Origin: Pecten maximus | Taxonomy: Eukaryota | Direction: 5' to 3' | Assembly (NCBI RefSeq): GCF_902652985.1 | Contig: NC_047017.1 | Coordinates: 17,360,001-17,424,000 of the forward strand | DNA: 64,000 bases | Shown: one piece after another, positions 23,937 to 57,443 of the stretch | Numbering within the stretch: the stretch's first letter is position 1 | Layout of the letters: each line of letters begins with the position of its first letter | Made by a program: the position numbers and the translations under genes | The notes under the pieces: model-generated | Database searches by the model: none | The model's input: only the letters and a program-made list of their open reading frames with translations | Told to the model about the DNA's origin: nothing

Positions 23937-26900
23937 TTACCCGACAAATTGACTGGGATTGAGAACATCAAATTTCATTCCGTTTCCCATGGACCCTGAT
24001 GTGCTGCCAGCACTAACTCCACTCATAAACTTGGATGGATCGGTCATACTGGAAGAGGACATCATTTGTTGATTAAGTTGATTTGGGTCGAAGCTACCAG
24101 AGCCACTACCACTGTTAGATCCTCCTCCAGAACTACTCCCAGAACTGCTGCTACTTCCACCACTACTTGACCCACCCCCACCAGAAGAAGAGCCACCTCC
24201 CATCATGTTGCTAGGCGACATCATCTGACTTGAGCCGCCACTTGGACTTGACGAACCCCCACTTGATCCACTGCTGCTGCCTCCACTACCAGAAGAACCA
24301 CCTCCCATCATGTTACTAGGTGACATCATCTGACTTGAACCACTTCCAGACGATGATCCTCCTGTTGATGACGAACCTCCTCCACTTCCACTCATCATAT
24401 TGCTCGGCGACATCATCTGGCTGGAACTGCCACCAGATGATCCACCACTTGAACCCGAAGATCCACCACTGCTCCCCATATTTTGCATGAATTGAGCAGG
24501 ATCAATTTTGTTTTTATCGGGACTGTTAATTGCATTTGGATCAAAGCTACCAGAACTACTGCTGCTACCCCCTCCAGAGCTGCTACTGCTTCCGCCGCTA
24601 CCCCCGGAACTTCCTCCCATCATGCTACTAGGCGACATCATCTGGCTCCCGGATGAACCTGAAGATCCTCCCATTGACGATGAACTTCCTCCGCTTCCAG
24701 TCATCATATTGCTTGGTGACATTTGACTTGAACTGCTTCCTGATGACCCACTACTTGATCCTGAAGTTCCACTTCCACTGGAACTGCTAGATGAACCACC
24801 ATTCATGTTCATTCCTTGAGTCATAGAAGACATTTGCTGCTGCATATTTTGGAGATTTTGGTTGAGCATGTTGTTGTTCATCGATGTCGGATCAAAGCTG
24901 CTGCTGCTACTACTGCTACTTCCACTTCCACCACTACTTCCACTGCTACTACTAGGTTGTTTCTGTTGATTAAGATTATTAGGGTTAAAACTACCTGTAT
25001 TTGATCCTGAACTGGACCCACTAGGGGATGACTGGCTTCCACTGCCTCCGCTTCCACTATTCATGTTTTGTTGAGCTTGCTGCATCATTTGGTTGTTCAA
25101 AGCATTAGGATCAAAGCTGCTGGAACTTCCACTAGATCCTGAACTGGATCCTGAACTAGATCCTGAACTAGATCCTGAACTAGATCCACTCGAAGATGAC
25201 TGACTTCCGCTACTGCTTCCTCCTCCACTGTTCATGTTTTGTTGTGCCTGTTGCATCATTTGGTTGTTCAAAGCATTAGGATCAAAGCTGCTGGAACTTC
25301 CACTAGAACCTGAACTGGATCCTGAACTAGATCCTGAACTGGATCCACTCGAAGATGACTGACTTCCGCTACTGCTTCCTCCTCCACTGTTCATGTTTTG
25401 TTGTGCCTGCTGCATCATTTGATTATTAAGTGAGTTGGGGTCGAAACTGCCCATCGATGAACTTCCTGAAGAACTGGAAGAAGAACCTGATATCATTTGA
25501 TTAGGGTTGAAGCTGCTACTTGAACTCCCCGAACTACTTCCGGAACTGCTTCCGGATGAGGAACCGCCAGAACCCGAAGATGGATTATTGGATTGCATGT
25601 ACTGTTGAGCTTGCTGCATCTGTTGTTGGAAAAGAGCATTTGGGTCGAAACTTCCAGATATGCTCGTATCTGACTGTGAAGATCCGGATGAACCTCCACT
25701 GCTACCATCTGAAGGGTTTGCCGGATTACTCCCTCCTGGGGATGCTACATTGCTAGAGCTACCTGTCAGAAACGACTGAGCAGCTTGTGATTGTTGTTGA
25801 TAGATGGCGTTAGGATCGAATGAAGCCCGTTTGAATACTGAAACGAACGTTTGATATATTTAGTGATTTATAGGAGTGATGAAAGTAGCTGAACAATAAT
25901 ATCACAGATAATAGTTAATATGTTCATTCATCAATGAATTATACATTGAACATATAAGCCGCACAGGAATTAGATATAGACGCAAAAAAATGAATTATAC
26001 TGCATCATACAGCTGTTTTGTCCTTCTAGAACTCATCAATACTATGGACCTGAAGTGCTTCTGCCTAGCAGTTAACGGAGGAAACTAAAAACAAGTCGAA
26101 AGAAATGTCAACATTTTGATGGGGAGGGAACAACAGCCTTATTACTCGATACATTTGTTTAGCAGAAATTCAATAACAGAAACACCATTTAACTGTCAGC
26201 TTTAGCTATTAAAAACTACCTGGTAGTTATTTAACTTACATTTGTTTTGAAAGAAGCGCTGGTTTGCATGTGCTAGATGAACTATGGCAGCTTGTCTAAC
26301 ATTATAAATCTACTGTTACGGTGAATCATGGGGTTAAAGTTGTAATATATATAACCTGTAATTAGACTGTTGATTCAGAGATATCGTATCCAACTATCTA
26401 TACAAATTGGCGGTGCAAGTCCAGTGATATATAATTAAAAGGATATTTATCTACTGAAGCGTTTTGAGTAGAAGAACTTCAAGTGGCAATCGTATTAAAA
26501 GATTGAATTGAATTGAGTTACATTTTAACCACTAATCTTTAAAATGGTTTAAAAACAAGGTGCGCTTGGAATTTTATCAATTTTTTTTATTATCCAGTGT
26601 TATTTATAGGTGTGTGTTTAATACGTAAAAGTACCAGCGGTATAGAAAGCATTACAGTCTAAATCGCGATTATAAATCTATAATACTGTTTGTCAAAATC
26701 AGTTTTGGCTCATCCCACACATAAGGACTATCAAGAGTTGTAGTAGCTACATGTGCGGAACGAAACGAACAACCAAGGGAAAAAAACAAATTAAGAGTTC
26801 AACCTCCTTGCCATGGACCAAAAACAACACATTTGAAAACGTCATGTCAGACACAAAGGATTAGTACCTTAAGATATTAATGAGACAAATCACAATAAAA

Positions 26901-33155: not shown

Positions 33156-34742
33156 TTAAGCCGTTCCGGGCCTTTCAGAATCAGTATTGGAAAATGTTAC
33201 TTTCTTTTTTGCTCTAATGTCTGCTACAGAAACGAAGCCGAAAAAGTTTGTGGAACGTCCTACAACTTTGAACGAATTTGTTTTCCGCAGAGAGCTTTGT
33301 TGAGGTTTCTTCTCCTTAATTGTCTTCCGAATACCTTTTGTCCTGTCTTGTTGTGTTTTGGTATTTTGTACACGTGTCTGGTTCTGTGTGGCTACAACTT
33401 TTTTGTCCGTTTTTGCAACACTTGTTGTAGTAAGACTACTTTTCCTTTCCACATCCTTTGTATTTAGAGTACCGTCTGAATCTATGCTTTTATACCATTC
33501 CGGTTGGTTACTTCGTGTCGAGGAAGCAGACCTCTCAGTATGGCTGACTCTTTTATGCGATGAAGCCGGTTTATCAGCTTTTTCTACACTCTCGTTTTTA
33601 ACAGTGTTCCGTTTGACATTTTTCTCTATTTTGGGAGTATTTTGAATAGTTTTCTCCATTTTGGGAGCATTTTGATGATTTTTCTCCATTTTGGGAGCAT
33701 TTTGATGATTTTTCTCCATTTTAGTATTGTGATGACTTTTCTCAACGTTCACCGTCGATGAATTCTTTGAGTGGCTATTTGAAGAAGATGAGTTTGATGA
33801 TGGCGGTCCTTCCTGTCGCGAGGATGTAGCACGTGACTGGCCATTAGTTAATGATGACTTATATTGCACTTTATTAGAACTTTGATTGCTTGGAGATGGA
33901 GCTGACGACTTAGACGATGGTGATGGTATACCGGGTACTTGTGCCATTCGAATTGATACTCGGTCTGGTTGCCCAGGCGACATGGTGACCATTATCCGCT
34001 CACCTCCCTGTCCAGGTTTGATATTTGGAAGGGGTAGGGACATTTTTCTAGCTTCACCCTTTTCAGTTCTAGAAACATTCATATCATTAACTTTAGAAAA
34101 GTTTGGATTCCTATAAACATCCTGATACGCAGGTCCTTGTGAGCTGTAACTACGTGAATCATTCACTGGAATATATGAATTGTTATTTTCAGGTCGAGTA
34201 GTAAATTGACTGGAATCATACCTGTTTGGAGTCTCCCTCCGTAAGTTTTCCCCGGGCATGTTAGCCATAGACAGTCGGGATGAAGGCAGGGAGCCATGAT
34301 GTACCATACTTGATCTAGAACTGTTCACATCCCCGCGCGGATATTGGCGAAACTGGTAAGCATCCTGACTGCTGTTGGCCCTTGAGTTGGGTACACTTTC
34401 ATTCCTCGCGTTATCCATTTGCTGCTGGTGAATCTCCAAATATGACTTGGGGAACCGACCACTGTAATGAATGTCATTTAAACTCATACTCTTTCGGAGA
34501 AATCGGCGTCCGTTGTCCTGACTATCCCTTTCCATCCAATACCGGCGTTCGGAGTCGTACCTATGTTTATCGACGACTCGCTGCTGTACCCGTCTTCTCT
34601 CGTCGACTGGAGACTGCATTGTCCTCAGAACCTCCATCATCTCCATGTCAAGCCGTTCCTCGTAGAACGGGATCACCTCCATCTGTCTCATCGGTTTCAT
34701 GACAGATACATTTGGTTTTTTCGTAAGCACGCTTTCCCGCAT
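33156..34742 (-). CDS. Intronless uncharacterised 528-aa low-complexity protein with basic C-terminus and no signal peptide
   Basis: 1.6-kb ORF in AT-rich DNA; internal 10-aa repeat KMEKNHQNAP; C-terminal KKKVTF. Confidence 0.8.
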   Translation of the reverse strand: MRESVLTKKPNVSVMKPMRQMEVIPFYEERLDMEMMEVLRTMQSPVDERRRVQQRVVDKHRYDSERRYWMERDSQDNGRRFLRKSMSLNDIHYSGRFPKSYLEIHQQQMDNARNESVPNSRANSSQDAYQFRQYPRGDVNSSRSSMVHHGSLPSSRLSMANMPGENLRRETPNRYDSSQFTTRPENNNSYIPVNDSRSYSSQGPAYQDVYRNPNFSKVNDMNVSRTEKGEARKMSLPLPNIKPGQGGERIMVTMSPGQPDRVSIRMAQVPGIPSPSSKSSAPSPSNQSSNKVQYKSSLTNGQSRATSSRQEGPPSSNSSSSNSHSKNSSTVNVEKSHHNTKMEKNHQNAPKMEKNHQNAPKMEKTIQNTPKIEKNVKRNTVKNESVEKADKPASSHKRVSHTERSASSTRSNQPEWYKSIDSDGTLNTKDVERKSSLTTTSVAKTDKKVVATQNQTRVQNTKTQQDRTKGIRKTIKEKKPQQSSLRKTNSFKVVGRSTNFFGFVSVADIRAKKKVTFSNTDSERPGTA

Positions 34743-38019: not shown

Positions 38020-39301
38020 ATGCCACAAGCGGTTTTCTGTCTCCTTCTTTTGCTTGCAAGAGGTAATTGATTTGTATCAATTTAAAACTTTATAATTTGC
38101 TTCCTTAATAATTTCATAAACAACTATAATTATAAGTCGATTGACTTGATGTTATAATCATGTAATTTAAACGGGTCACTTTTAGCCTTCAGTTGTCAAA
38201 GACGTACTGCTCTAACTTAGTATTCGTGAAATTTAATGTCACGCGACGTTGAAATCTTAAATGAGTGTACCCATGTATTCACGTTTCTGTCACGCTAAAT
38301 TATGTTCTTCTTTTGTTTCTACTTTAGGAAGTTTGACGACTGCATCTAGACCGGAATTTATATCAGCTGGTCACTTTCTTAATGCAAACTCCAGACCATT
38401 GTCTGGTCAAACGCTCGGTAATCATGGACCGTATATGTTTCATCAGAGACCAATGTTACCCAGTCAAAATGAAAATGAAGTAAGTAGACCATCGAATAAT
38501 GCTGGTGTAGCATTTGCCCCACAATTGATACACGACTATTTCAAACCTGGCAAAGAATCATACGGCCAAGGATCGCTTGAGCAGCAAAACAAATGGCCGT
38601 CGAACTTCATGGCAACAAGGCCGAAGCCCATCCAAATGACCCTGGCTAAGAACAGCAGACCTATGTTAGGGTTACTAAAACAACTTATGGCCGGTAGATT
38701 CCATATAGTGGCTGACGCCATTCATTTGGATGCTGTACCGATCATCGAACGACCTATGCAGCCGTATATAGAAGGTATGATTATTGAACCAGACAGTTTA
38801 ATAACAAGTGTACATAGCCACATTGAACCAATACAGCCAATGCATTTTGAATTACCAGAATCAGCCAGACCAGAACACGTTACTTCTTTGACGAATGCCC
38901 GCCCAAACAATGGTGTGCAGCAAGTCCCATTCCAACTGCTTCTCAAAGAATTCAATGACTTGGCTGCGAAAATTAATTTAAAACCCAATGAGCACGCGGT
39001 TACATTTTCCAGCTTATACCAAAATTATATGAAGCTGCTCGAACAACAAAACAAAACAGCATCTCCTCCTATTTTAAAAACTACACTGCCCACAACGACT
39101 GCAAAAACAGAATCAACAGCACCACCTACGACTTCGGAAACGAGGTCAACCATAATTATGAACGTAACACCCACCACATCCGATATTCCAATGAAGACAA
39201 AAGATGACTTTAACATGATCCAGACATCATTCAGCAAAGCTAAAGATGATAAGCCAGCCGTGTGGCTTCCGGGTATGGGACCGGAAATGACCTCACCGTA
39301 A
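38020..39301 (+). CDS. Gene B: secreted orphan protein, Pro-rich with Thr-rich C-terminal part, ~338 aa
   Basis: Exon 1 38020-38062 (MPQAVFCLLLLLAR, phase-1 GTAATT) joins exon 2 38328-39301 (pyrimidine tract + TTTAG) in the frame of the 346-aa ORF; AATAAA near 39479. Confidence 0.8.
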
Positions 39302-40184: not shown

Positions 40185-43100
40185 CTATTTCTTTTTCCCA
40201 AGTGGATTAGCATTTGGGTCAAAACTTCCTGCCGACATTGAATTTGGATCAAATGATCCAAAGTGCATGGAGTTGGGATCAAATGATCCAGCTTTCATGG
40301 AGTTGGGGTCAAATGAGCCAGCTTTCATGGAGTCAGGGTCAAATGATCCTGCTGACATAGAGTTAGGGTCAAAGTTCGGCATAGAATTGATGACGTCAGG
40401 ATTAAATGTTCTTTTCCTCCTTCCAGTTCCTGATAATAGAGGAAGTAATCAATTTTTGAAAATCATTTCATTTTTTTTCTGGTAACCTTATTATCAAACC
40501 CTGTACCATTCCGTAGATACTAAAACTATTTCCATTTCTGAAATTAAATCTTACTCGGGTATTATTGATTTTTTAAATGTAGTCTTCCATAATTAATCAA
40601 GTTAGTTGGCTTAGAAGAAGAAAATGCCCCTAGCAGAATAACATTTGTAATTTCATATATTTTATCAAATACTACTAGTTAAATTCTTTGTAGAAAAATA
40701 GCATCATTGATAAAACTTCAATTTGAAGAACTTCATAAAAACTATCATATTATTCTAAGCATTCAGAAAAACAATTGCAATATGAAAATATACAAACCAA
40801 AGTTGTTTATACTGTTGGGATCAAAGGAGCCAGATGAACTTCCGGTAAAAGAATTTGGGTCAAAAGAACCGGATGTACCTTCACCAGATGTAAATTGATT
40901 AGGGTCAAACGACCCACTGCTGCCACTGAAATAGAACGCCCAGATATTGGTAACGAGCAATACAAACATGGAAATGCTTATAATAGACTGGCTGAGAGAT
41001 TTACATCCGTAACACAAAAACACATTCTTTCTTTATCAAAGAAATCATTTTTTATCACAATTGTTCGTTTCACAAAAAAGAAAAGAAACAAAGAAAGAAA
41101 TGCAACCCTTGACACCAGTAAGTACATGATATAGATTCATATTCGTTGGGTTTATGTTATAAAGACATATCTTTTGCTGAAATATATAATCATTGTTCAA
41201 TAAAAGACAACCAAACATTAATATTCCTTATATCAAAAATAACAAAACAAGAAAAAAAAAAAAAAAAACCGACCTTCCCCCGGATCCGCTGGAGAATCCA
41301 CTGCCACTACCAAATCCACCAGTACTGCTTCCGAACCCGGAGCTGCTTCCGTCGCCTCCGAAGTTACTGTTGATTGCGTTAGGGTCGAATGAACCACTTC
41401 CGGTACTGCTGCTGCTGCTACCGTCACCAAAACCATTGGAGCTGAACCCTCCAGAACCAAAGTTCTGGTTTAAGGCATTAGGGTCAAAAGTTCCTGGAAA
41501 TTATCGAGAATTTGAGAATACACAAGACTTTGACTATTTGACATTAGGGCAAATATGATCATCTGTATTATATAAAAAAATCATAGTTGGGTTTCAAAAG
41601 CTGTGATATAAACAAACGAAATGAGTTTGTAATAGACATATACATGTATGCCAATGACGTGCTAGACAAATAAAAAGTAACAACACAATAACAAAAGACA
41701 GCTCCCGGTTGAATCTCATTTAAATATTATTAGCAATAAACTTTACCATTTATAAATAATTCTTATATAATTACAAAAAGATCGAAAACATGCTATAACA
41801 ATACCTTCTGATGATAAGTTCCCACTTCCTTTACAAACTCTCAGCATCGGTTTAACATAATTTGACAGAAACTCACCATACACTAAATATAAATTCACCA
41901 TTTATCAACATAACACAAACTTATCATACACTTAACATAAACTCTCCATACACTAACATAAAACTCGTCAAAGGCTAAACATAAACTCACCATACACTAA
42001 AAATAATTTAATCATACACTAAACATAAACTCACCATACACTTAACATAAACTCACCATACATTTAACATAAACTCACCATACATTTAACATAAACTCAC
42101 CATTCACTTAACATAAACTCACTATACACTAAACATAAACTCACCATACACTAGACATAAACTCACTTTACACTAAAAATAATTTAATTATACACTAAAG
42201 ATAAACTCACAATACATCTAACATAAACTCACCATACACTTAACATAAACTCATCGTACACTTAACATGAACTCACCATACACTAAACATATACTCACCA
42301 TACACTTAACATAAACTGACCATACACTTAACATAAACTCACTATACACTAAACACAAACTCACTATACACTTAACATAAACTCACCATACACTAAACAT
42401 AAACTCACTATACACTAAACATAAACTCACCATACTTAACATAAACTCATTAACGCACAGACACGGAACAGAAAAGCACCAGACACGAACAAGAAAGCAC
42501 CAGACACGTAAACAGAAACGCACCAGACACGAAACAAACCACCAGACACGGAACAGAAACGCACCAGACACGTAACAGAAACGCACCAGACACGGAACAG
42601 AAACGCACAGACACGGAACAGAAACGCACAGACACGGAACAGAAACGCAGCAGACACGAAAAAGATAAACTCACAATACACTAACATAAACTCACCATAC
42701 ACTTAACATAAACTCACCATACACTTAACATAAACTCACAATACACTAAACATAAACTCACCATACACTTAACATAAACTCACTATACACTTAACATAAA
42801 CTCACAATACACTAAACATAAACTCACCATACACTTAACATAAACTCACCATACACTTAACATATACTCATCATACACTTAAAATAAACTCACAATACAC
42901 TTAACATAAACTCACTATACACTTAACATAAACTCACAATACACTAAACATAAACTCACCATACACTTAACATAAACTCACCATACACTTAACATATACT
43001 CATCATACACTAAACATAAACTCACCATACAATTAACATAAACTCACTATACACTTAACATAAACTCACAATACACTAAACATAAACTCACCATACACTT

Positions 43101-46230: not shown

Positions 46231-49200
46231 ATGAGGAGCAATGTGACTTGGACTGCCGTTGCTATGACGATAGTGTTGATTTCCGGTAAGTACCACGTAT
46301 ACGTTTGATTATGAAGAAAATTCAATATTATTCAAAATAATGCTTAGTCATATATATAAGGTGCATTCCCTAAGCAAAAAACGTTGCATTGTTCGTATTT
46401 AATGTTTCAAACATATACGTAATTCCGAATTCCGGAATTAAGAACCACAGTTAATCAATAATTATCAATCACCACCATCTCGACTCATATAACCCCGTCA
46501 CTATGAATACTTATAAAATATTACATTTTATAATTCCTATAACCTAACAAAAAATAGCCAGGCGTTACTTATTTTGAACTTGTCTACCAGTAGTTTGAAA
46601 TTGAACCAGAGGTCATGTTTTATCGTAGTACAGAATGTACTTTTGAACCATATAAGAGCGACTTATTTCCTCACTTTGGCAGCATTGTCAATATACAATT
46701 AAACCCCACCAACTCAAAATCGTATGAACCATGTAAAAAGTTAGAGGATTACGAGGTATTCGAGTAATCAGAAGCTTGTCAAAGATATCGATATCGATCA
46801 CCCCCATTCTGTAAAATCACAGAGGAAATTAACTGAAGTCACCTCTTTATGTTAAGACTGCTTTGGCTATCGAGAACTTTGTAACTCTTTTGTCAGACAT
46901 ATGAAGACTATGCTAACATTCAACATGCATGATATATGTTGACAACAAAATCAATCACTGCTATACATAATGGGATTTTTTAAAATAACTATTTAGTCTG
47001 CATCTATTTAATTGATCAACACATAAATATCATTTTGCAACATGGTGTTATGTGTTTTTCTTTATCTTTACAGGTACCAGTTCAATCGCACTACCCGGCC
47101 TTGACCTTAGCACTAGTGTTGATGACCCCGAACCTTTCCATCTACCTGCATACCTCAGTCCTGTAGGCGAAGGCAGCAAAGGGGTGAAAACCCAGCCCAC
47201 TACTCGCCCCCCTTCCACCCAGCAACCTGCTTCACACAGCATCACCGCCGGGCAAAATGGCGACGCATTCTCAAACTACCTCATAAAGAGTCTCACACAA
47301 ATGGACGCAAACACTCTAAAGACGCTTTCGAATATTATCAATCTGGAATTGAATAAACAAGTACCATCTCATCAGATACAAGGTCAAGCTCAAAGTCAGA
47401 CATATGACAAAGTTAACGTCCAAAGTCCACCTGAGGCAACACATATTGGTCAGTATCCACACATATCTCATGGGATCACCAGTGAGTCTTCAAGTAGCCA
47501 ATATAAACCTTCGACAATGGCAGGAGCTTCCCAAATGAAGCAGGAAGGTCAAGGATATTCTCACTCTAATAACCTATCCAATAAGCCACTTGGTTTGAAC
47601 GGTGGTCAAGCACCGGCTTTCTCACAACAGACCGTTGATCCCTCTAGGAACCAGCAGCCACAAATGGGAACTTCAGTTAGCCAGTCACAATTTAACCCTG
47701 GACAGATGACGGCGTCTAGTATGGGAGGTGGAAATGGTAACACGGTCCAGGGTATTTCTAACTCGATGTTTCAGACTGCTGTAAGCGGTGGCCGGCCGTC
47801 AGCCTCTAATATGGAAGTGGATACGTCATTTGATCCAAACAGACTCATGGCATCGATAGAAGCAGAGACGTCTCAATACAACCCGAATGCATTCATGGCA
47901 AAGCAAAATTACATCACCGCAAACCAATGGAACTTTGCTAAGCAAAACCAGGTACCTCAGAACACACAATACGTCAATCAGGTTCAGACGGATAATTCTG
48001 CCGTAGAACAACAGAAGAAACCAAACATTATGGGAACTACTCAGCTTAATTTTGAATCCTGATATAATGATGACAGCACTAGGCATTAAAGGCCTGAAAT
48101 TTACATTTAATCCCGATAAAATCAACTCGTTTGGAAGCAATGGGTTTCAGCCTGGTTTGTATCCGCAGTCTTCTGGCAATCGGAAGTTGCCGAAGAACAT
48201 GTTCAATGCAGATACAGTCAACAAGATGCTAATGAGTCACGGTGTAGAGCCAAATCATCAGACAAAACAACAGCCAACGAAGGACCAGGCAAGTCAGGTC
48301 GTCCACAAGTCGGTATACAATCCAGATACATTCAATCATCCGGCAGTACACACTGTACCAAACACCTACTTGCAGTTTATTGGAAATGAAGGTAGTGCTA
48401 CTGTGCAGTCATCAGTAAATAACCATATCGGTAATGGTAAATCAGAGCAATCCATACAATCCGAAACACCTTCTCGTCAGCAAAACGGGAATGAATTCCA
48501 CACACATTTATTGTCACCGATCAGTGATATGGGTAGCACGTCATCTATAAACAACACTTTACAGTCAGTGAAGTTCAATCCCGATCAGACAAATGCTGCC
48601 CAACGCCAGTTCGACCCAGAAATATTATATAAATCTCTGTTTGTCGGTGGAGGCAGACATACATTACCTAGCACACACATGACAATATCTCTACGAAAAT
48701 CGGCTCGCGATGAAAATGGAACAGACGCTGCAGAAATCAATACACCTAAACCACAGACAACCAGTTCAAACTCAAAAGATTCAGGACAATCTACAACTCT
48801 ATCGAGTACCGTTACGTCTACCAAACAACCGGAGACAAGTGTTACGTCAACCACGACTGCTACTACAACTGGAGCAGACGGACTCATGTTTAACCCCGAC
48901 AACGTAAATGCAGGCATTGCCCAGATGATGAATTTCAGCCCAGGATCTCTGATGATGGGATACAATCAGATACAAGCAGGGCAGAACACTAATATGGCAA
49001 ATGCTGCATATAACCCTAATCAAATCAATCAAATGGGAGAATTCCAATCAGTGGTGTCTCCCATGATGGCGGCATTAATGGGAGAAAGCGGCGGTGAGAG
49101 TAACATTGGGTCTCAGACTGCCTCTCAGCCTAATCATGACCAGTCTCAAAGTATATCTGTCATGTTTAATCCAGCTGATGTGAATCACGCAAAGATGAGC

Positions 49201-50196
49201 TTCGACATCAACCAGCAGATGGGTTTCAATGAAAATTCAGGCAACGCAATGTTTGACCCCATGAAGATAAATGTTCTTACAAATAAGAATTTAAATAAGT
49301 CGGTCGGTGCTACCAACAAAAACAACTTCTTTAGCTCAAACGGAATGAATATGATGGATAATTCTGTTTTCACCGGAATGTTTGACCCCAACAAAGTCAA
49401 TCAAGCGCCTATGGCAGATATGAAAGTTAACAAACATCAAAATAGTTCAGCTAGCTCTTCAATGATGAATTATATGTCAACATTTTTGGGAGTGGGTAGT
49501 GTTGGAGGTGCTGGGGGATCTGTGTTTGGCGGGAGTTTTAATCCCTCGGAAGTTAATACGGCTGTTTTTAATCCAAATGATGTGAACAATGCACGAATGA
49601 ACTTTGACCCCGCTAATATGCTTGATCGTAATCCTGGTTACGATTCGGAAAAAGCGTCTCAGACAAATTTCGATCCTACAAAGATCAACGATATTCACAT
49701 GAATTTCCAGCCGCCTTTTATACATGTTGATAAAAACAAGGACGTTAACTCTACATCTAATGCATTTAGTCAGTACAACTCCAAATTCACTCCAGGGCAG
49801 CTCTCTCCTAATGGTAACGCTATGGTGTTTAATCCCACTGAGATAAACCAGGCCAAAATGCACTTTAGCGCTGTAGACATTTTCAACTCCACTGACATCG
49901 GAAATTCCATTGTGACACAGGGCAGCTCGCTCTTCAGTCCACAAGTGCCAAATAAAAATTCCAACATTGCGATGCCTGTGTTCGATCCAGTAGCAGTCAA
50001 CAATATGCAAATGAATTTCCTTCCCAATTCAGCATTGGGTGCTTATCAATCCTCTTTAACAACCATCGGAACAAAACCGAAGCCGAGTACCACATCAATG
50101 TCCACCCCTACTTCACCTACTACTACGACAAGGCAGAAAACGTCCATCACAGCTCCAAGTTCTGTTTCATCTCCAAACTCCACCGACGTAAACTGA
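46231..50196 (+). CDS. FDPN gene D: large secreted Asn/Gln/Ser/Met-rich FNP/FDP-repeat protein (~1058 aa if a 1-nt frameshift near 48054 is corrected)
   Basis: Exon 1 46231-46285 (MRSNVTWTAVAMTIVLIS, phase-1 GTAAGT) joins exon 2 from 47074 (TTTACAG). The 336-aa and 714-aa ORFs overlap and share motifs and composition; ~20 [FY][DN]P motifs; AATAAA near 50236. Confidence 0.82.
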
Positions 50197-51974
50197 TAGT
50201 AGTTGCAAGGAAGAATGTGTTTATCATAATGCAAGAAATAAATATTAAATGCTGTTGTGATGATATCTAGCACTGCTTTATTTATTTAATTATTTATGAA
50301 TTTATTAACTTCCATTTTTGTCACTGATCATTACTAACATAAATGTCATACATTTGGTTCAACAAATTTCATGCTTGAACTTTTAATTTCGTTGGTGTAT
50401 ATGAAATGTGACATTAAATTGCTGTGCTGCCCTAGGTCATAGGAGAGATCAAGAAAATGACGGATTTTATCTAATAGTAGTTTTTCGACTATCTCCCTGA
50501 GAAAACCTACCAATCAATGTTTCGTGTTACCACGTTATGAGGAACAAACTGATCAACTGAGAGATGGGTGAAGCAAGCATGTATCTGTTCTTGAACCGTT
50601 CAGTTTGACTTATATGATTAGTGGAGAATTGATGAAGATGATAATGAAATACTAGGCTCTACGCTCGATGGATTGCACAAAATACGCACAAGATATTAAC
50701 ACCTTTCGAAACAGTTTGATACAGTGGAATCAAAATGAATTAAACTTAACCAACAGTTGTTTCAGTCTTATACAATTCGTCAGTGATGCTATGAGAGGCA
50801 AATAAAACCCGAAACAGGCCGAAAGAAATAGATGTCAAAATCTGGATGTTCTGAACTGTGTAACTATTCAAATAAACTAAATCGTGACAAGCAATCTAAG
50901 ATATACCTTGGGGACTTAAAAGTCCACCAGCAGTGTCTACCTCCTGTAATCACTAATAATTGTGCAAAAGACACACAAGCTATTATCACCTTTAAACAAA
51001 TGAGAGTTCGAGACAGTGGAAATGAAGTGAGTTAACTACACCATAATACGACAACGACCCCATACGTGGCGATTTATGCGGCCATAAAGTGCCAATAGAT
51101 AAAGAATGGAGGGAAAGACAAAAAAACCCACAAAAATCGAATATACAATGTATATGTATATAAAAGAGTGTGTCTAATTCTCACTTCGATTCCACATAAT
51201 CATCATCATTACCAAACTTTAAGAGGCACGGTACAATATCTGGTGTACAAATATGGCGCTCCAACAAATATTGAAAAATTATATTTCCTTCAATAAAACA
51301 ACAAAATGATAGACTAAGAACTCATTTTTGACAATTTTAACCAAGGAGAATCTGACCACCCATGGCCCTCGACATGATGTCTACACCATCTGTGTCTATG
51401 GAAGGTAACATAAATGTTGCAGCTAGATTTCGTAGCATATAAGGTACTTTCCTTTTTTCAATTATTTAAGAAACGTATTGGAAGTATAAGCTTGTATCAA
51501 TATATGGGCATGAAAAGACAATAACAACAATTTCATGAAAGAATTTGTGACACGATAAAAACATAAGCACACTTGGCTGAATTGTCCCTTTATTGCAGTA
51601 AATTTTCCATTAAATTATTTCTGTATTCTACAACGTAAGGTTGTATCTTAGAGAGATGGATATATGGTCTCGCTGAAAGGCCAAAATTGTTGTCTATGCC
51701 CAAAACTTTCCGAGGAAAAGGTGCGGTACATGGCACAAACGGAATGCAATGTTATCTTGGAACTAAATAATGCCAAGGTCGACATGTGGTCACTTACGTT
51801 AAGTAGATATTCCTGTACAAGGGAGTAACGGTCAAAGTGTGCCCAGATTGTCCTTCACTCTTGATAACGAACAATGATGTCACGTTTAAGATAATTCATA
51901 TCATATTAGTGTCTTCTCACTTATGTCACCTGCCAGTCCTTTGTCTTCGATAGATTAACACCTTTTCGAACATT

Positions 51975-54900
51975 ATGAAGTGGTTTTCACTTCTTTTCGT
52001 TGTGGCCCTCTTTCATGGGGGATTGGGGAGGAACTTTGCAGGTAAGAGATAGTGGCCAGAGTTAATGGTGGACCACATTTTGCTGATGGCAATTTGAGAT
52101 AAGAGAGTATTAGTTGAACTGTAATCTCGTGTACCCTAACTCAAAGTATAAATACGAAAACAAATTTCACATCTAAACTTTTATCTTTGCTAATTGATGA
52201 TGCTAGGTACATTTAATAGAAACTTAAGTACGGTTCGGAAAGTGCGTCATCACTGTGCTTTAACAAAAAAGGTGTCCACATATGCGATAACAATTAATAC
52301 CGCATCAACATCAATTCGAAAACAGCGAACCCAATAATATTCTTGTTTACACATGAAAAAACGTACTATTGTTTTGCATAATATTAATGCAATATCATAA
52401 TTATTTGGATACACAAAATATTTCATTATGAAATAATATCATTTATTGCATTTTTGCCAGTGAAATATAGAAATTTATCAAGCTAATAAAACTTATATTT
52501 TCACTGCAGCGATGAGCAGTGAAAATATAAGATGTTGCAGTGAAAATATAAGATGTTGCAGTGAAAATATAAGTTTTGCAGTGAAAATATAAGTTTTCCG
52601 TTTTTGACCAGTCAGAGCGGACCTTTGTATTCACCTCGTTGAAACTTGCCGATTTTTCCAATCGAAGCGGAGATAGACAAATTGGTTATTTTGCTATATT
52701 TTTGAAATAATCTGACCAATTTTTGACCAAATACTCACTTGACGTTAGCTATTCATGCACATATTCTCCGATAACTGTAGAAAATGCTTAAATTGCGCTG
52801 ATCAGTCCTTTAAAAATGGCGCCGTCATGTTGACGTAGAGTAACGTCACAATGAGATGACGTCATTACTGATTCCCGCACTTTTTGACACTATTAATTTT
52901 TCGATGTTTTTAATTTTGTTTAAAAGTTTATGAAATGCAATAAAAAGAAAATTGAATGGTTTCCCGTTAAATATAACATATGTTTCACTCGTATGACAGA
53001 ATATCGATATTTTCACGAGTGCGAAGCACGAGTGAAAAATATCGATATTCTGTCATACGAGTGAAATATATGTTATATTAAACGGGCAACCATTCAATAT
53101 CCTCTATGTATTAATGATAGTTACATCGATAAATTGATTAATATTTTGATAGCGGATACAAGTCTATTTTACGCTCAATATGACGTTGGAGGAAGAGTAA
53201 AAAGAGTAGAATCCGGTGTCTGGTACAGTAACAGAATATTTAGAATGCACAATTCTAACCCTTATTTCAGCAGGAACCGATTACCCGAGTAGTATTTGGA
53301 TCAGATTGAAGAATATGTGTATTCCATAAAGCAGGTCAATGTCATTTCACATTAATATATTTTAAAAGAACAAAAGTAGGTTCATTTAATTTCAGAAGCC
53401 ATTTCTTCGATGCATTTTTGTTATGTTAAATGCTGGGATATAACATGAAAAAAAAACGCAAACCCAAAACCAAAAATAGAATTTCGAAATTCCATTCTGG
53501 GGCCATTAGGACGTTTTCTAGACATAAAAGAATATATCGTGATCAAAAAGGATGACATCGCCTAAACATAAAAAGAAAGCAGTACTTGTTTTCTTCTCTG
53601 ATATGACGTCATAAGATTCTGACATTACTGCCATTACTGGTAATTACAAAATCACGTATTGTAGTTACGTGACACCATTGAAGTATTTATTGTGTTAACG
53701 AGTGTTATTTACTTGATGTTTACTAGTGACATTTTCTTGATTTACACTATAACAAGTTAGGATTTTCGAATGTAACATAAATAGATCATTTAGAAAAATA
53801 ATGATTGCATGAAACTTCATAGTCATCTCGAGGCATTTGATGCGAAAGGAGCGCGGACATCAAGGCCATTCTTAATCAACTTGTATATACAAGTTTTCGG
53901 TCTCCTTCTTCAGGATTACGGAGACAGACGTCCAGTTCCGGTGCCACTTCCGTTTTTTCACCTTTTAGTCCAGTAAAAATGGGAAGCGTGAGTGGTGCCG
54001 GTGCCATGAATCCGTTCGCTGCTCAGAGTCAGATGAATCATACCGGGTTTCAAAGTAGTTCGTCATCAACTTCTTCTATTTTCTTGTCTTCCGGAAAGAA
54101 CACAAACTTCAATCCCCTGTCAGGACCCTCTGGAGCGTTAAACCCCTTTAACACCCAGGCATCGTCAGGACAGCAAAGTACTTCTGGAAATAACACAAAC
54201 TTCAATCCCCTGTCGGGACCTTCTGGAGCATTAAACCCCTTTAACACCCAGGCATCACCAGGACAGCAAAGTACTACCGGATACTCCGGACCCGCAGGCA
54301 ATCCAATGCAGTCAGGAAATCCTATGGACATGAATCCATTTGGAGGTAGCACTAATGCAACTTCCAATTCTTCAAGCCAATCAACGGCAAAATTCCCATT
54401 AAATATGAATCCATTCGGATCAAACCAAATGAGTTCAACTGGTTTCTCATCAACATTTGATCCTAACAAAATTAACGGGATGGCATTCTCGGCACTGATT
54501 GGAAGAGGAACATTAGGTCAGTTTAATATACCGCTACTATTTACTATGTACGCTTTTAGAAGCAATCAAGTGGAATAATATTCTTATTTTAGTGTGTTGC
54601 TATCATTGTAGTTAAGCGACAAGCCTCGGGAGGATCTTCCACGATCCCCAAATACGACCCAAATGCGGTCAACCAGTTGACGTCGAGTTTCCTTGACCCC
54701 TCCAAGTCCATGCTCGGCGCAGGAGGTGCCACTGGTGGCATGTACAACCCAGATCAGTGGAATACTATCAGCTTCAACATGTTCAACCCCCAGTCTCAGC
54801 TAGGGAAGCGATGTAAGTTGGGACTTGTTGTAATACATAGGCTAAATGTCGTATGTAAATTACACAAACACAAGATGACGACTCACATTCAAAGAAATTT

Positions 54901-55618
54901 GTAGCAGAATATGTCGCGTTAAAAGTAATTCGGATAAACATTCTCAAGACAATTAGATTCTGCATTGAATTATAAGCATTTAAATATCTAGTCAATCTTA
55001 TAATTGTATTACGGTCAAAAGATTATTCTTTGCGTTTATGTTTAAGATATCAAAAGACAAACTGCTCAAGCGCCAAGCACAGGTGGAAGTATGTCACCTT
55101 CTGCTGGATCAACTTCCGGTGGATCTAGTCCCAGTGGATCTAGCCTGACCAGCGGGGCAAGTCAGACAGGAGGAGCCAGTCAGTCTGGGGGAGCTAGTCA
55201 GGCCGGAAGTGCTAGCCAAACTGGGGGAGTTAGTCAAACTGGGGGCTCGAGTCAGACATCAGGGGCTTCTCAGCTGACACAACCTAGCATGTTTACTAAC
55301 CCAGGGGCATTTACAATGGGTGGTGGGTCACCTTCCTCATCCTCTTCGTCTTCAGGAAGTAGCGGAGGAAGTAGTAGTAGCAGTAGTAGTAGTGGCAGCG
55401 GAAGCGGAAGTGGAGGTAGTGGATCATCCAGTTCCAGTTCTATACCATCATTCGATCCAAACAAATTAAACCAAATTATGTTTAGCTTCCTTGATCCCTC
55501 AAAAGCCCAACTAGGGCAAGGAGGGGGAGGGGGGTCTGGTTTTAATCCGGACCAGATCAACAGCCAGGTGTTCAACTTCTTCAACCCTAACCTCATGATG
55601 GGAGGAGGAAGACGCTAA
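51975..55618 (+). CDS. FDPN gene E: secreted modular precursor, 480 aa, three modules delimited by dibasic sites
   Basis: Exons 51975-52041 (MKWFSLLFVVALFHGGLG), 53914-54516, 54612-54812, 55047-55618, all introns phase 1, total 1443 nt. Modules start LRR-Q, VKR-Q and IKR-Q; AATAAA near 55720. Confidence 0.88.
52441..53107. mobile_element. Hairpin-ended non-autonomous element in gene E intron 1
   Basis: ~75-bp-arm palindrome at 52950-53100 centred on GC-GAA-GC; internal ~20-bp repeats GCAGTGAAAATATAAG; second copy at 62744-63038. Confidence 0.75.
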
Positions 55619-57443
55619 GGTAAACCATAACGTGACACGGGGCTTTATTTATTAGGATTTGATGCATAACATGCTGTACAATTTTAGTCGGATGAATTTT
55701 ACACTGTTAATGCACATGTAAATAAAAGAAAATAAGTTAGAATGCTGAGTGATGCTCCTGTGATATATTGTAGGATGCATCAAAAGAATAAGATGATACT
55801 TGATAAATATGTTGTGTGGATTTTGTAAAAATAGTGCATTTGTGACAAAAAGTCTGTTTGATCAAGCCATGTCATGTAATTTTACAATATATCAAGCTGA
55901 TCACATCAATTCACCAAAATCTTGCGTAAGTAAATAAACCTTAATCATTGTATACAAAGATGTCCATGATGTTTAATTTTCGCTGAATAATCATATTTTA
56001 ATTTCATAAAGCATGAGAATACATTTCCAAATGTTACAACGTACGATTTATCAAGTCTATGAATGTCTCTATTTGTATGTTTCAGGATAAACGCCAAAAG
56101 AGGTGAAACATTACTACTTCAATATTTTCTATAAAAATATAATAAACATGGGAACAGACACCACGTATTTGTGTTGTTTTTCTATGCTGTAATGACCATC
56201 GAAAAAGGACAGTTATTGTTGAATACAACTTTCTTCATTAAGTCACCATTATCGTTCGCTGTTCAACATTAAGTAAGTGAAACTGCATTTAGTACATAAT
56301 TAGGGAAAGAGACTTTCTTCCTAAGCATTGTGATATCAAAGGATATTTCAAAATGGTATTTAAAATAAGGATAACAACAAAAATTAGCATTGCCTTGTTT
56401 CATACCCCCGTGTGATTTTCTTTCGATATATGAAAATATGTTGTGTTTTTTTAGGAAAACAAACATTCGGATTTTGTTTTATGAAATCTTAAGTCAGAAC
56501 ATAATTAGGAAGGGAGATGCATAATAACAAAAACTGCGAATATATGGATACTGTTAAATGGTAACATGACAAAATAAAAATAAAAAAAAATAAAAAAAAT
56601 ATGGCTACTGGTTCAAGGTAACGCATCAAAAACAGTTAAAAGATGGATACTGTTTCATTGTAACATGACAACAAGAACGGCGAATAGATGGATCATGTTT
56701 CATGGTTATTGGTGGATTATTTCAGAAAATACTAAAAGATAACAAAATATATTTCGATACTATCCTTCTGAGTAGAAATCTACACATAACATCTGTATCA
56801 ACGATTTCATCTATATAAGTCATTATCTATTATGTTTACACTAGGGAACATATAAACAAGTCATGCTTTACCCTTGTGGGCAGAGTCAATGAGACCCAAT
56901 CAACTCTTACTGATTCTGGACTAGGCGAGAATCAATATCAATTGTTACACCTGTTGGTCAATTGGTCATTCATCAAATGTCCTACTAATGACACCCGTAA
57001 TTAGTGTTTCTTTATTACACATGGACAAATTACATGTTAGGGACCTATAAACACACATACGATCTGAACATTCATCTGTTGAAGTCGCTGACCAAAGTGT
57101 CCCGTCTTCAAGTTTATAGTAAGAGGGAAATACCAAAACACTTCCATTATTGGATCCATAACAACCACCATGGTACGTATATAGTACTTCAGATATCTGG
57201 GGTGTACTCTTTTCAAAACAACCAGCCTGTGTAAATAGATCTAACACAGACATTCCTAACTCTTATTGTCCTCACATTTAAAACTCACTATGTAACACGT
57301 GGTATACTCCTTTCAGTAAACGTAAACCCGTATTTAAACACCAGCGAAGTATGGCATTTGACTGTTGTTAGTACAATAACAATAGATAGGGACAGAGACA
57401 ATTTCGTAAAGGCTTAAAATTTGGGTACACACATCTCGCGCAG

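Follow-up and report, generated by a model that had tools for sequence, protein, structure and literature searches.

Animal prohormones, neuropeptide precursors and exocrine precursors have a common layout, in which a signal peptide is followed by units with [K/R]R flanks, a Gly acting as amide donor and an N-terminal Gln. The Lys-Arg and Arg-Arg pairs (KR/RR) are the sites of prohormone convertases, the N-terminal Gln cyclises to pyroglutamate, and the C-terminal Gly donates an amide through the action of PAM. Several units can be present in one precursor, in separate exons, and alternative splicing then changes the set of peptides. The same layout is found in gene E of the king scallop Pecten maximus, located on the forward strand of a window of 64,000 nucleotides, the whole stretch that was analyzed (contig NC_047017.1, positions 17,360,001 to 17,424,000; coordinates below are those of the window). 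Gene E differs from these precursors in its units, which are 61-183 residues long, of low complexity, predicted to be disordered and free of cysteines, as well as in its back-to-back sites (G-KR-xx-KR-Q), its restriction to bivalves and its clustering with very large motif-repeat paralogues. The reading favored here, with modest confidence, is that gene E encodes a secreted, Cys- and Glu-free, disordered pro-protein of a bivalve-restricted family, which is predicted to be cut into capped cassettes.

Two further groups of processed proteins are close to this locus in some respects. The fungal KEX2-processed repeat proteins (KEPs), known from genome mining and mostly of undescribed function, are secreted and consist of repeated cores with kexin-type dibasic flanks (PMC6339444, PMC7329392, PMC9769878). 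They share with gene E the organization of a secreted precursor with repeated units between dibasic sites, which is an analogy and not a homology. Unlike gene E, KEPs are fungal, have short cores, lack the Gly-amide and Gln-pyroglutamate signals and are not built of exon cassettes. In bivalves, Pif and BMSP are shell-matrix pre-pro-proteins, which are cut post-translationally into two functional proteins (PMC5379566). Pif contains VWA and chitin-binding domains and one cleavage point, whereas gene E has no known domain, several cassettes and end-capping signals. The true relatives of gene E are KP79_PYT10582 from Mizuhopecten yessoensis and CHS0354_015533 and CHS0354_015535 from the freshwater mussel Potamilus streckersoni, all three annotated as hypothetical proteins. 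They resemble gene E in the module, in units that start with [K/R]R-Q and in units that end with Gly and basic residues. The Mizuhopecten protein differs from gene E in having two copies of the exon-2 module, and CHS0354_015533 in its single-product form.

Organization of gene E

An earlier, sequence-only reading of the window described gene E as three phase-1 coding exons, each opening with a dibasic site followed by Gln and closing with Gly and basic residues. The residues quoted for these exons are confirmed, and the translations give exactly the proposed starts LRR|QTSSS, VKR|QASGG and IKR|QTAQA. The three exons are not the full set, as the gene has a fourth coding exon with the signal peptide (51898-52041), in addition to an intron in the 3′ untranslated region (UTR; 55620-56085). 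The features of the gene are:

51898..52041, forward strand: 5′ exon with the 5′UTR, the ATG at 51975 and the signal peptide MKWFSLLFVVALFHGGLG, then RNFA; ends in phase 1 (one G)
53914..54516, forward strand: cassette exon 1 (module 1), 201 codons, NPF-rich; (G)LRR-QTSSS ... SALIG-R-GTL
53919..53927, forward strand: Arg-Arg-Gln at the start of module 1, from the translation and the shuffle test
54501..54506, forward strand: Gly-Arg of module 1, four residues short of the end of exon 1; kept as LVGR in Mizuhopecten and as FVGR, there at the exon end, in L008, a 16-kb bivalve locus
54612..54812, forward strand: exon 2 (module 2), (V)KR-QASGG ... NPQSQL-G-KR; both joints confirmed by RNA, orthologues found
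55047..55619, forward strand: exon 3 (module 3), (Y)IKR-QTAQA, a Ser/Gly-rich spacer and the conserved module, with the end NLMMGG-G-RR; RNA joints on both sides
55430-55615, forward strand: conserved module within exon 3, ending MMGG-G-RR
55620..56085, forward strand: 3′UTR intron, spliced in RNA runs X2 and X5, kept in the X1 and X3 contigs
56086..56113, forward strand: start of the 3′UTR exon; RNA contigs extend to 56113

The coding part of the 5′ exon, translated from its ATG, is MKWFSLLFVVALFHGGLGRNFA plus one G, and its product is, as read from the sequence, a predicted signal peptide. Exons 1, 2 and 3 are in phase 1 at either end, and the stop codon (55616-18) lies one base short of the exon 3 donor. 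Together these three exons encode 455 residues, including 108 Ser, 72 Gly, 37 Asn, 33 Gln and 33 Pro, with neither Cys nor Glu; the predicted product of exon 2 has 61 residues. The proposed Gly-basic exon ends are present in exon 2 (QLG-KR) and exon 3 (GGG-RR-stop), but exon 1 closes with LIGRGTL, where the single Arg is not at the exon end. Amidation of module 1 would rest on that Arg, and the GR is still conserved in the relatives, as LVGR and FVGR.

The conserved module is around 55 residues long and follows the pattern FDPNxΦNQ..FLDPSK..LG..G-run..FNPDQxN..FNFFNP. Exon 2 and the C-terminal part of exon 3 are 54% identical (E = 5e-14), which confirms the earlier proposal that the motif shared by modules 2 and 3 comes from exon duplication; Mizuhopecten has an extra exon-2 module. 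AlphaFold2 modeling of the module on a 21-row alignment gave a low-confidence model without a fold (mean pLDDT of 58.7, almost no secondary structure). By this model the module is probably disordered, or takes up a structure only when bound.

Repeats are present in exon 1, where a 93-bp unit occurs 2.1 times at 54088-54281 with 91% identity and doubles the 31-residue unit NFNPLSGPSGALNPFNTQAS, and in exon 3, where a tandem-repeat scan gave arrays with 15-bp and 18-bp units (55094-55257) as well as an AGT run (55370-55398). The stretch 55327-55424 of exon 3 was left out as repeats by the layout of the RNA contigs. The 3′UTR exon reads GAT AAA CGC CAA AAG AGG TGA at 56086-56106, which is D-K-R-Q-K-R-stop in frame 0 and not in the phase-1 frame. 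Since the orthologous exon of L008 has a coding cassette downstream, opening with L-RR-Q, this basic stretch may be what is left of a further cassette that gene E once had at its 3′ side; the donor next to the stop codon, only one base away, continues to be spliced.

Transcripts and splicing

The RNA evidence consists of spliced contigs from four P. maximus runs (X1, X2, X3 and X5) of two studies. Two of the exon boundaries proposed earlier are matched by joints with GT..AG introns, namely 54516|54612 in X1 and X3 and 54812|55047 in all four runs. The acceptor at 53913, at the start of exon 1, is absent among the joints in these contigs. The exon-skipping isoform that the earlier reading suggested looking for was found: the joint 52041|54612 (GT..AG; X2 and X5) connects the 5′ exon to exon 2 and skips exon 1. 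Such splicing reads ...RNFA-V-KR-QASGG, and splicing to exon 1 would read ...RNFA-G-LRR-QTSSS. The joint 55619|56086 in X2 and X5 defines the 3′UTR intron, which begins one base past the stop codon. In X5, the template-switch oligo of the cDNA stands immediately ahead of 51898, and therefore the transcript starts there. The best-supported mRNA is composed of the signal peptide, module 2 and module 3, without exon 1.

The status of exon 1 depends on other observations. Its contigs continue upstream into the intron without splicing (from 53096 in X1), and their depth in X2 and X3 is 5-17, near the intronic and intergenic background of 2-6; contig depths cannot quantify isoforms. Three observations nevertheless speak for exon 1 as a true cassette. 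X1 and X3 contain its splice joint with exon 2. Its last 64 residues are 75% identical to the M. yessoensis model, where they are likewise joined to the exon-2 module. In L008, the orthologous exon comes in phase 1 after a signal-peptide exon of similar kind, and its first residues past the acceptor are G-RRFDR-Q.

The contigs fall into two transcript classes. The class seen in X2 and X5 contains the signal-peptide exon, exons 2 and 3 and the spliced 3′UTR intron. The class seen in X1 and X3 contains exons 1, 2 and 3, is unspliced upstream (from 53096) and in the 3′UTR, and has no coverage of the signal-peptide exon. The difference could come from an alternative promoter or be an effect of the assembly.

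Relatives in other bivalves

By sequence comparison, gene E is a member of an undescribed, bivalve-restricted FDPN-module family with no prior name. All database searches were carried out exon by exon. Neither the three exons nor five neighboring open frames matched a Pfam family at E <= 0.1, ESM Atlas gave no usable match for exon 3, and the literature search with the motif strings and the locus tags of the relatives returned nothing relevant. Sequences of gene E do not occur in one supplementary file of a biomineralization toolbox paper. Abductin and MSP-1 appear improbable as identities, since the composition of gene E is different, with neither an Asp-rich nor a Gly-Met repeat domain.

A word search with exon 3 led to five open frames from other assemblies. 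Their contigs contain an exon-2 orthologue ending QLGKR and exon-3 orthologues that open with NRR-QSSPS and INKR-QTTQS and end with GGGGR-stop-G, PPGRRRR or PTGKR, the last being followed by a further exon opening VRR-QSSPS. The search with exon 1 found KP79_PYT10582, which reads ...SSLVGRMAL-VKR-QTSGG ... QFQLG-RR-RLTR-QTTIPKYDPN ... QSQLG-KR; its two exon-2 modules have borders alike.

A profile built from the module of exons 2 and 3 (A1) was searched against 1.84 billion proteins and gave 29 matches, including 19 at E <= 1e-10; where a species is named, which is the case for two, it is a bivalve. Both Potamilus proteins, listed as 'hypothetical protein' under adjacent-numbered tags, are among these matches, and their sites have RMRR-Q and GSKR-Q starts. 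CHS0354_015533 consists of a signal peptide, a 16-residue propeptide and KR-QANFGSFDPN ... NPQNQMG-K-stop. An intron-free sequence in a catalogue of marine metatranscriptome proteins reads ...NQLG-KR-GLF-RR-QSQQP, and its source hints at expression in planktonic larvae.

In L008, the signal-peptide exon has a donor in phase 1, and the orthologue of exon 1 reads G-RRFDR-Q ... FVG-R. The latter joins in phase 1 to (K)R-QLSLSS, with the junction G-RKR-Q. The module-3 unit of L008 is spread over three exons (phases 2 and 1) and ends MMTG-KRR-AL, the next exon opens with L-RR-QQIDPS, and a further unit reads VG-RR-QASPG ... QAQMAG-stop. The proposal of one peptide per exon therefore holds in gene E but is not a rule of the family, as shown by this unit and by the relatives P0007, P0008 and P0019, with two modules per exon.

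Putative cutting and capping signals

The positions of the signals were compared with chance by 200,000 within-exon shuffles. The probability of [KR][KR]Q within the first five residues is 2.1e-4, 1.7e-3 and 2.8e-4 for exons 1, 2 and 3, respectively, and that of a terminal G-dibasic is 8e-4 for exon 2 and 1.7e-4 for exon 3. The 455 residues contain five dibasic pairs, and each of them is found at an exon end. The splice consensus as the source of this pattern was ruled out; the exon ends are AAG CGA T|gt and AGA CGC TAA G|gt, with 1-2 codons between the acceptors and the basic codons.

The comparison between genes gives the same picture. Arg is at P1 in every site examined, with K, R or T at P2, and Gly stands ahead of the C-terminal basic cluster in every module end examined, covering at least six paralogue and orthologue groups and including the Gly-stop ends. 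These ends are QLG-KR, QLG-RR, GGGG-R, PPG-RRRR, PTG-KR, MTG-KRR, MAG-KRR, MTG-RRR, SGG-KKR, QMG-K-stop, QMAG-stop, FVG-stop and PLG-KKK-stop, and in three genes the protein ends with Gly-stop or Gly-Lys-stop. Junctions with two sites 2-3 residues apart are present in three species: G-KR-YI-KR-Q in gene E, G-KR-GLF-RR-Q in the metatranscriptome protein and G-KRR-ALL-RR-Q in L008. The Ser/Gly-rich spacers between the sites vary freely in length and sequence among relatives. The comparison thus supports conservation of the putative cutting and capping signals across bivalve orders, while the spacers diverge.

Such a pattern is what convertase cleavage, trimming of basic residues, Gly-dependent amidation and Gln cyclisation require. 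Neither composition nor a Lys-dependent cross-link easily accounts for it, and the constant Arg at P1, with K, R or T at P2, makes a protease site the better fit; transglutaminase cross-link sites were rejected as the principal explanation, the constant residue being Arg and not Lys. As a prediction, cutting by a convertase to give products whose ends are probably pyroglutamate and amide is well supported by these comparisons. The P. maximus genome has the P_proprotein domain at seven places, with at least five convertase P-domain loci, and many loci of Cu2_monooxygen, the family that includes the amidating enzyme. These loci indicate only that the machinery can exist.

Proposed maturation and alternative explanations

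Past the signal peptide, each coding exon of gene E is a phase-1 cassette with a short hydrophobic residue, [K/R]R, Gln, a variable Ser/Gly-rich spacer, the module of ~55 residues and Gly-[K/R]n. In the proposed mechanism, a convertase of the furin/PC type would cleave after Arg, and a carboxypeptidase would take off the basic residues. Amidation would then act on the exposed Gly, and the Gln at the new N-terminus would cyclise to pyroglutamate. Two polypeptides of ~61 and ~183 residues are expected, and a third from mRNAs that contain the cassette exon, all of them capped at both ends. Since each cassette has its own sites and all introns are in phase 1, exon skipping or duplication would alter the set of products and leave the maturation undisturbed. 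The products are more likely to be an extracellular gel, matrix or adhesive from exocrine or larval secretion than hormones. This preference follows from their size and composition, from the way in which Ser/Gly spacers surround aromatic and Asx-Pro motifs, and from the large motif-repeat paralogues. A structural role and maturation in the regulated secretory pathway, as suggested in the earlier reading, may apply.

The processing interpretation of the earlier reading is partly supported: the signals are non-random and conserved across bivalve orders, but the large exon 1 is missing from the best-supported mRNA. Several observations count against the cutting and capping of gene E. The residue after the cut site is Gln in most groups, but Ala or Thr in two paralogue types. 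Gly makes up 16% of these proteins, and composition could account for part of the Gly-basic pattern; as modules 2 and 3 arose by duplication, their shared ends are not independent within one species. In P0007, P0008 and P0019, no basic site separates the two modules of the exon. The predicted products are much longer than usual amidated peptides. Two large P. maximus runs from 2020 contain almost none of the stretch; should they be the libraries that the genome paper made from adult mantle, the adult shell becomes a less likely place of action.

Three alternatives have to be weighed against this reading. An uncut, secreted, disordered matrix protein would use the basic clusters as charge patches (toward mineral, chitin or acidic polymers) or as cross-link sites. 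This explanation, which we consider unlikely though the strongest of the three, agrees with the composition, similar to that of low-complexity shell and adhesive proteins, with the poly-Ser runs, which could be phosphorylated, and with the relatives that join modules without basic sites. The invariant Arg at P1, with Lys being dispensable, does not fit it; nor do the genes that end in Gly-stop without any basic residue, an arrangement suiting amidation and not a charge patch. The first site is always a few residues past the signal peptide (gene E, CHS0354_015533 and L008), as in propeptides. The same low-complexity composition and lack of a Pfam match, with the unspliced exon 1 contigs, could also be expected from an open frame transcribed by chance that is not a functional coding gene. 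Such an origin is highly improbable in view of the canonical splicing in two studies, the 5′-complete contig and the conservation of frame, module and sites between bivalve orders.

The precursor of a signaling peptide (hormone, neuropeptide or pheromone) is a somewhat weaker candidate than the uncut matrix protein and appears doubtful. The ligand would be the module of 55 residues, with the Ser/Gly-rich part as a spacer, and all the classical prohormone marks are there and conserved; the module is far better conserved than the spacer, and many bioactive peptides have caps at both ends, as predicted here. However, the predicted products of 61-183 residues are disordered and without cysteines, and the spacer would stay on the module, as there is no internal site between them. 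Neuropeptides in the strict sense are products of ~3-40 residues with neuronal expression, and sequences of gene E do not occur in the searched supplementary files of the neuropeptide survey of Yesso scallop ganglia. The paralogues of 640-730 residues, with dozens of motif copies, look like a material and not like a ligand.

Paralogue cluster and other features of the window

Three FDPN-motif genes are clustered with gene E in the 64-kb window, and the cluster includes the proteins of 640-730 residues. These paralogues, and the repeat of intron 1, are:

23940..25859, reverse strand: paralogue in one large exon, FKR-ASFDPN ... FVG-stop
40188..41500, reverse strand: paralogue 'gene C', last exon G-RRKR-TFNPD ... 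PLG-KKK-stop
47016..50193, forward strand: paralogue 'gene D', large open frame with ~25 F[DN]PxxΦN motifs
52442..53107, strand not assigned: intron 1 repeat, outside the coding gene, with an RNA-contig depth of 500-1000, many rearranged joints and loose ends

The adjacent-numbered tags of the two Potamilus relatives suggest that the clustering of FDPN genes is old. The king scallop assembly comprises 918,306,378 bases in 3,983 contigs (PMC7191990), and its search with the exon-2 protein gave gene E's own two modules only. The other FDPN genes of the window were missed because they are too diverged for this query.

The intron 1 repeat is probably transposon-derived and looks like a family expressed from many copies; it contains a 21-bp tandem array (x3.8) at 52516-52593. 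A 48-bp minisatellite at 943-2398, with the unit TTPYLINTQPHPDHIL, is open in several frames on either strand and is probably not coding. Two long open frames, 33156-34742 on the reverse strand (528 residues) and 38261-39301 on the forward strand (346 residues), are Ser/Asn/Pro-rich and without a Pfam match.

Significance for bivalve biology

A wider proposal, which is held tentatively and with clearly less confidence than the reading of gene E itself, is that in this bivalve-specific family each phase-1 exon is an autonomous 'peptide cassette', giving combinatorial sets of capped, disordered polypeptides of 60-190 residues as extracellular building blocks of larval shell, adhesive or gel. If true, the maturation typical of neuropeptides would be put to use for a material, not for signaling. 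If gene E is cut and capped as predicted, the prohormone pathway would yield long, disordered, exopeptidase-resistant polypeptides. The locus would be a clear example of exon cassettes with their own processing signals and would help to explain how such genes grow and vary by exon duplication and skipping. A conserved, unannotated bivalve gene cluster gains a name and a testable biochemical prediction, and it may matter for the larval or secreted biomaterials of bivalves that are farmed, scallops and freshwater mussels among them.

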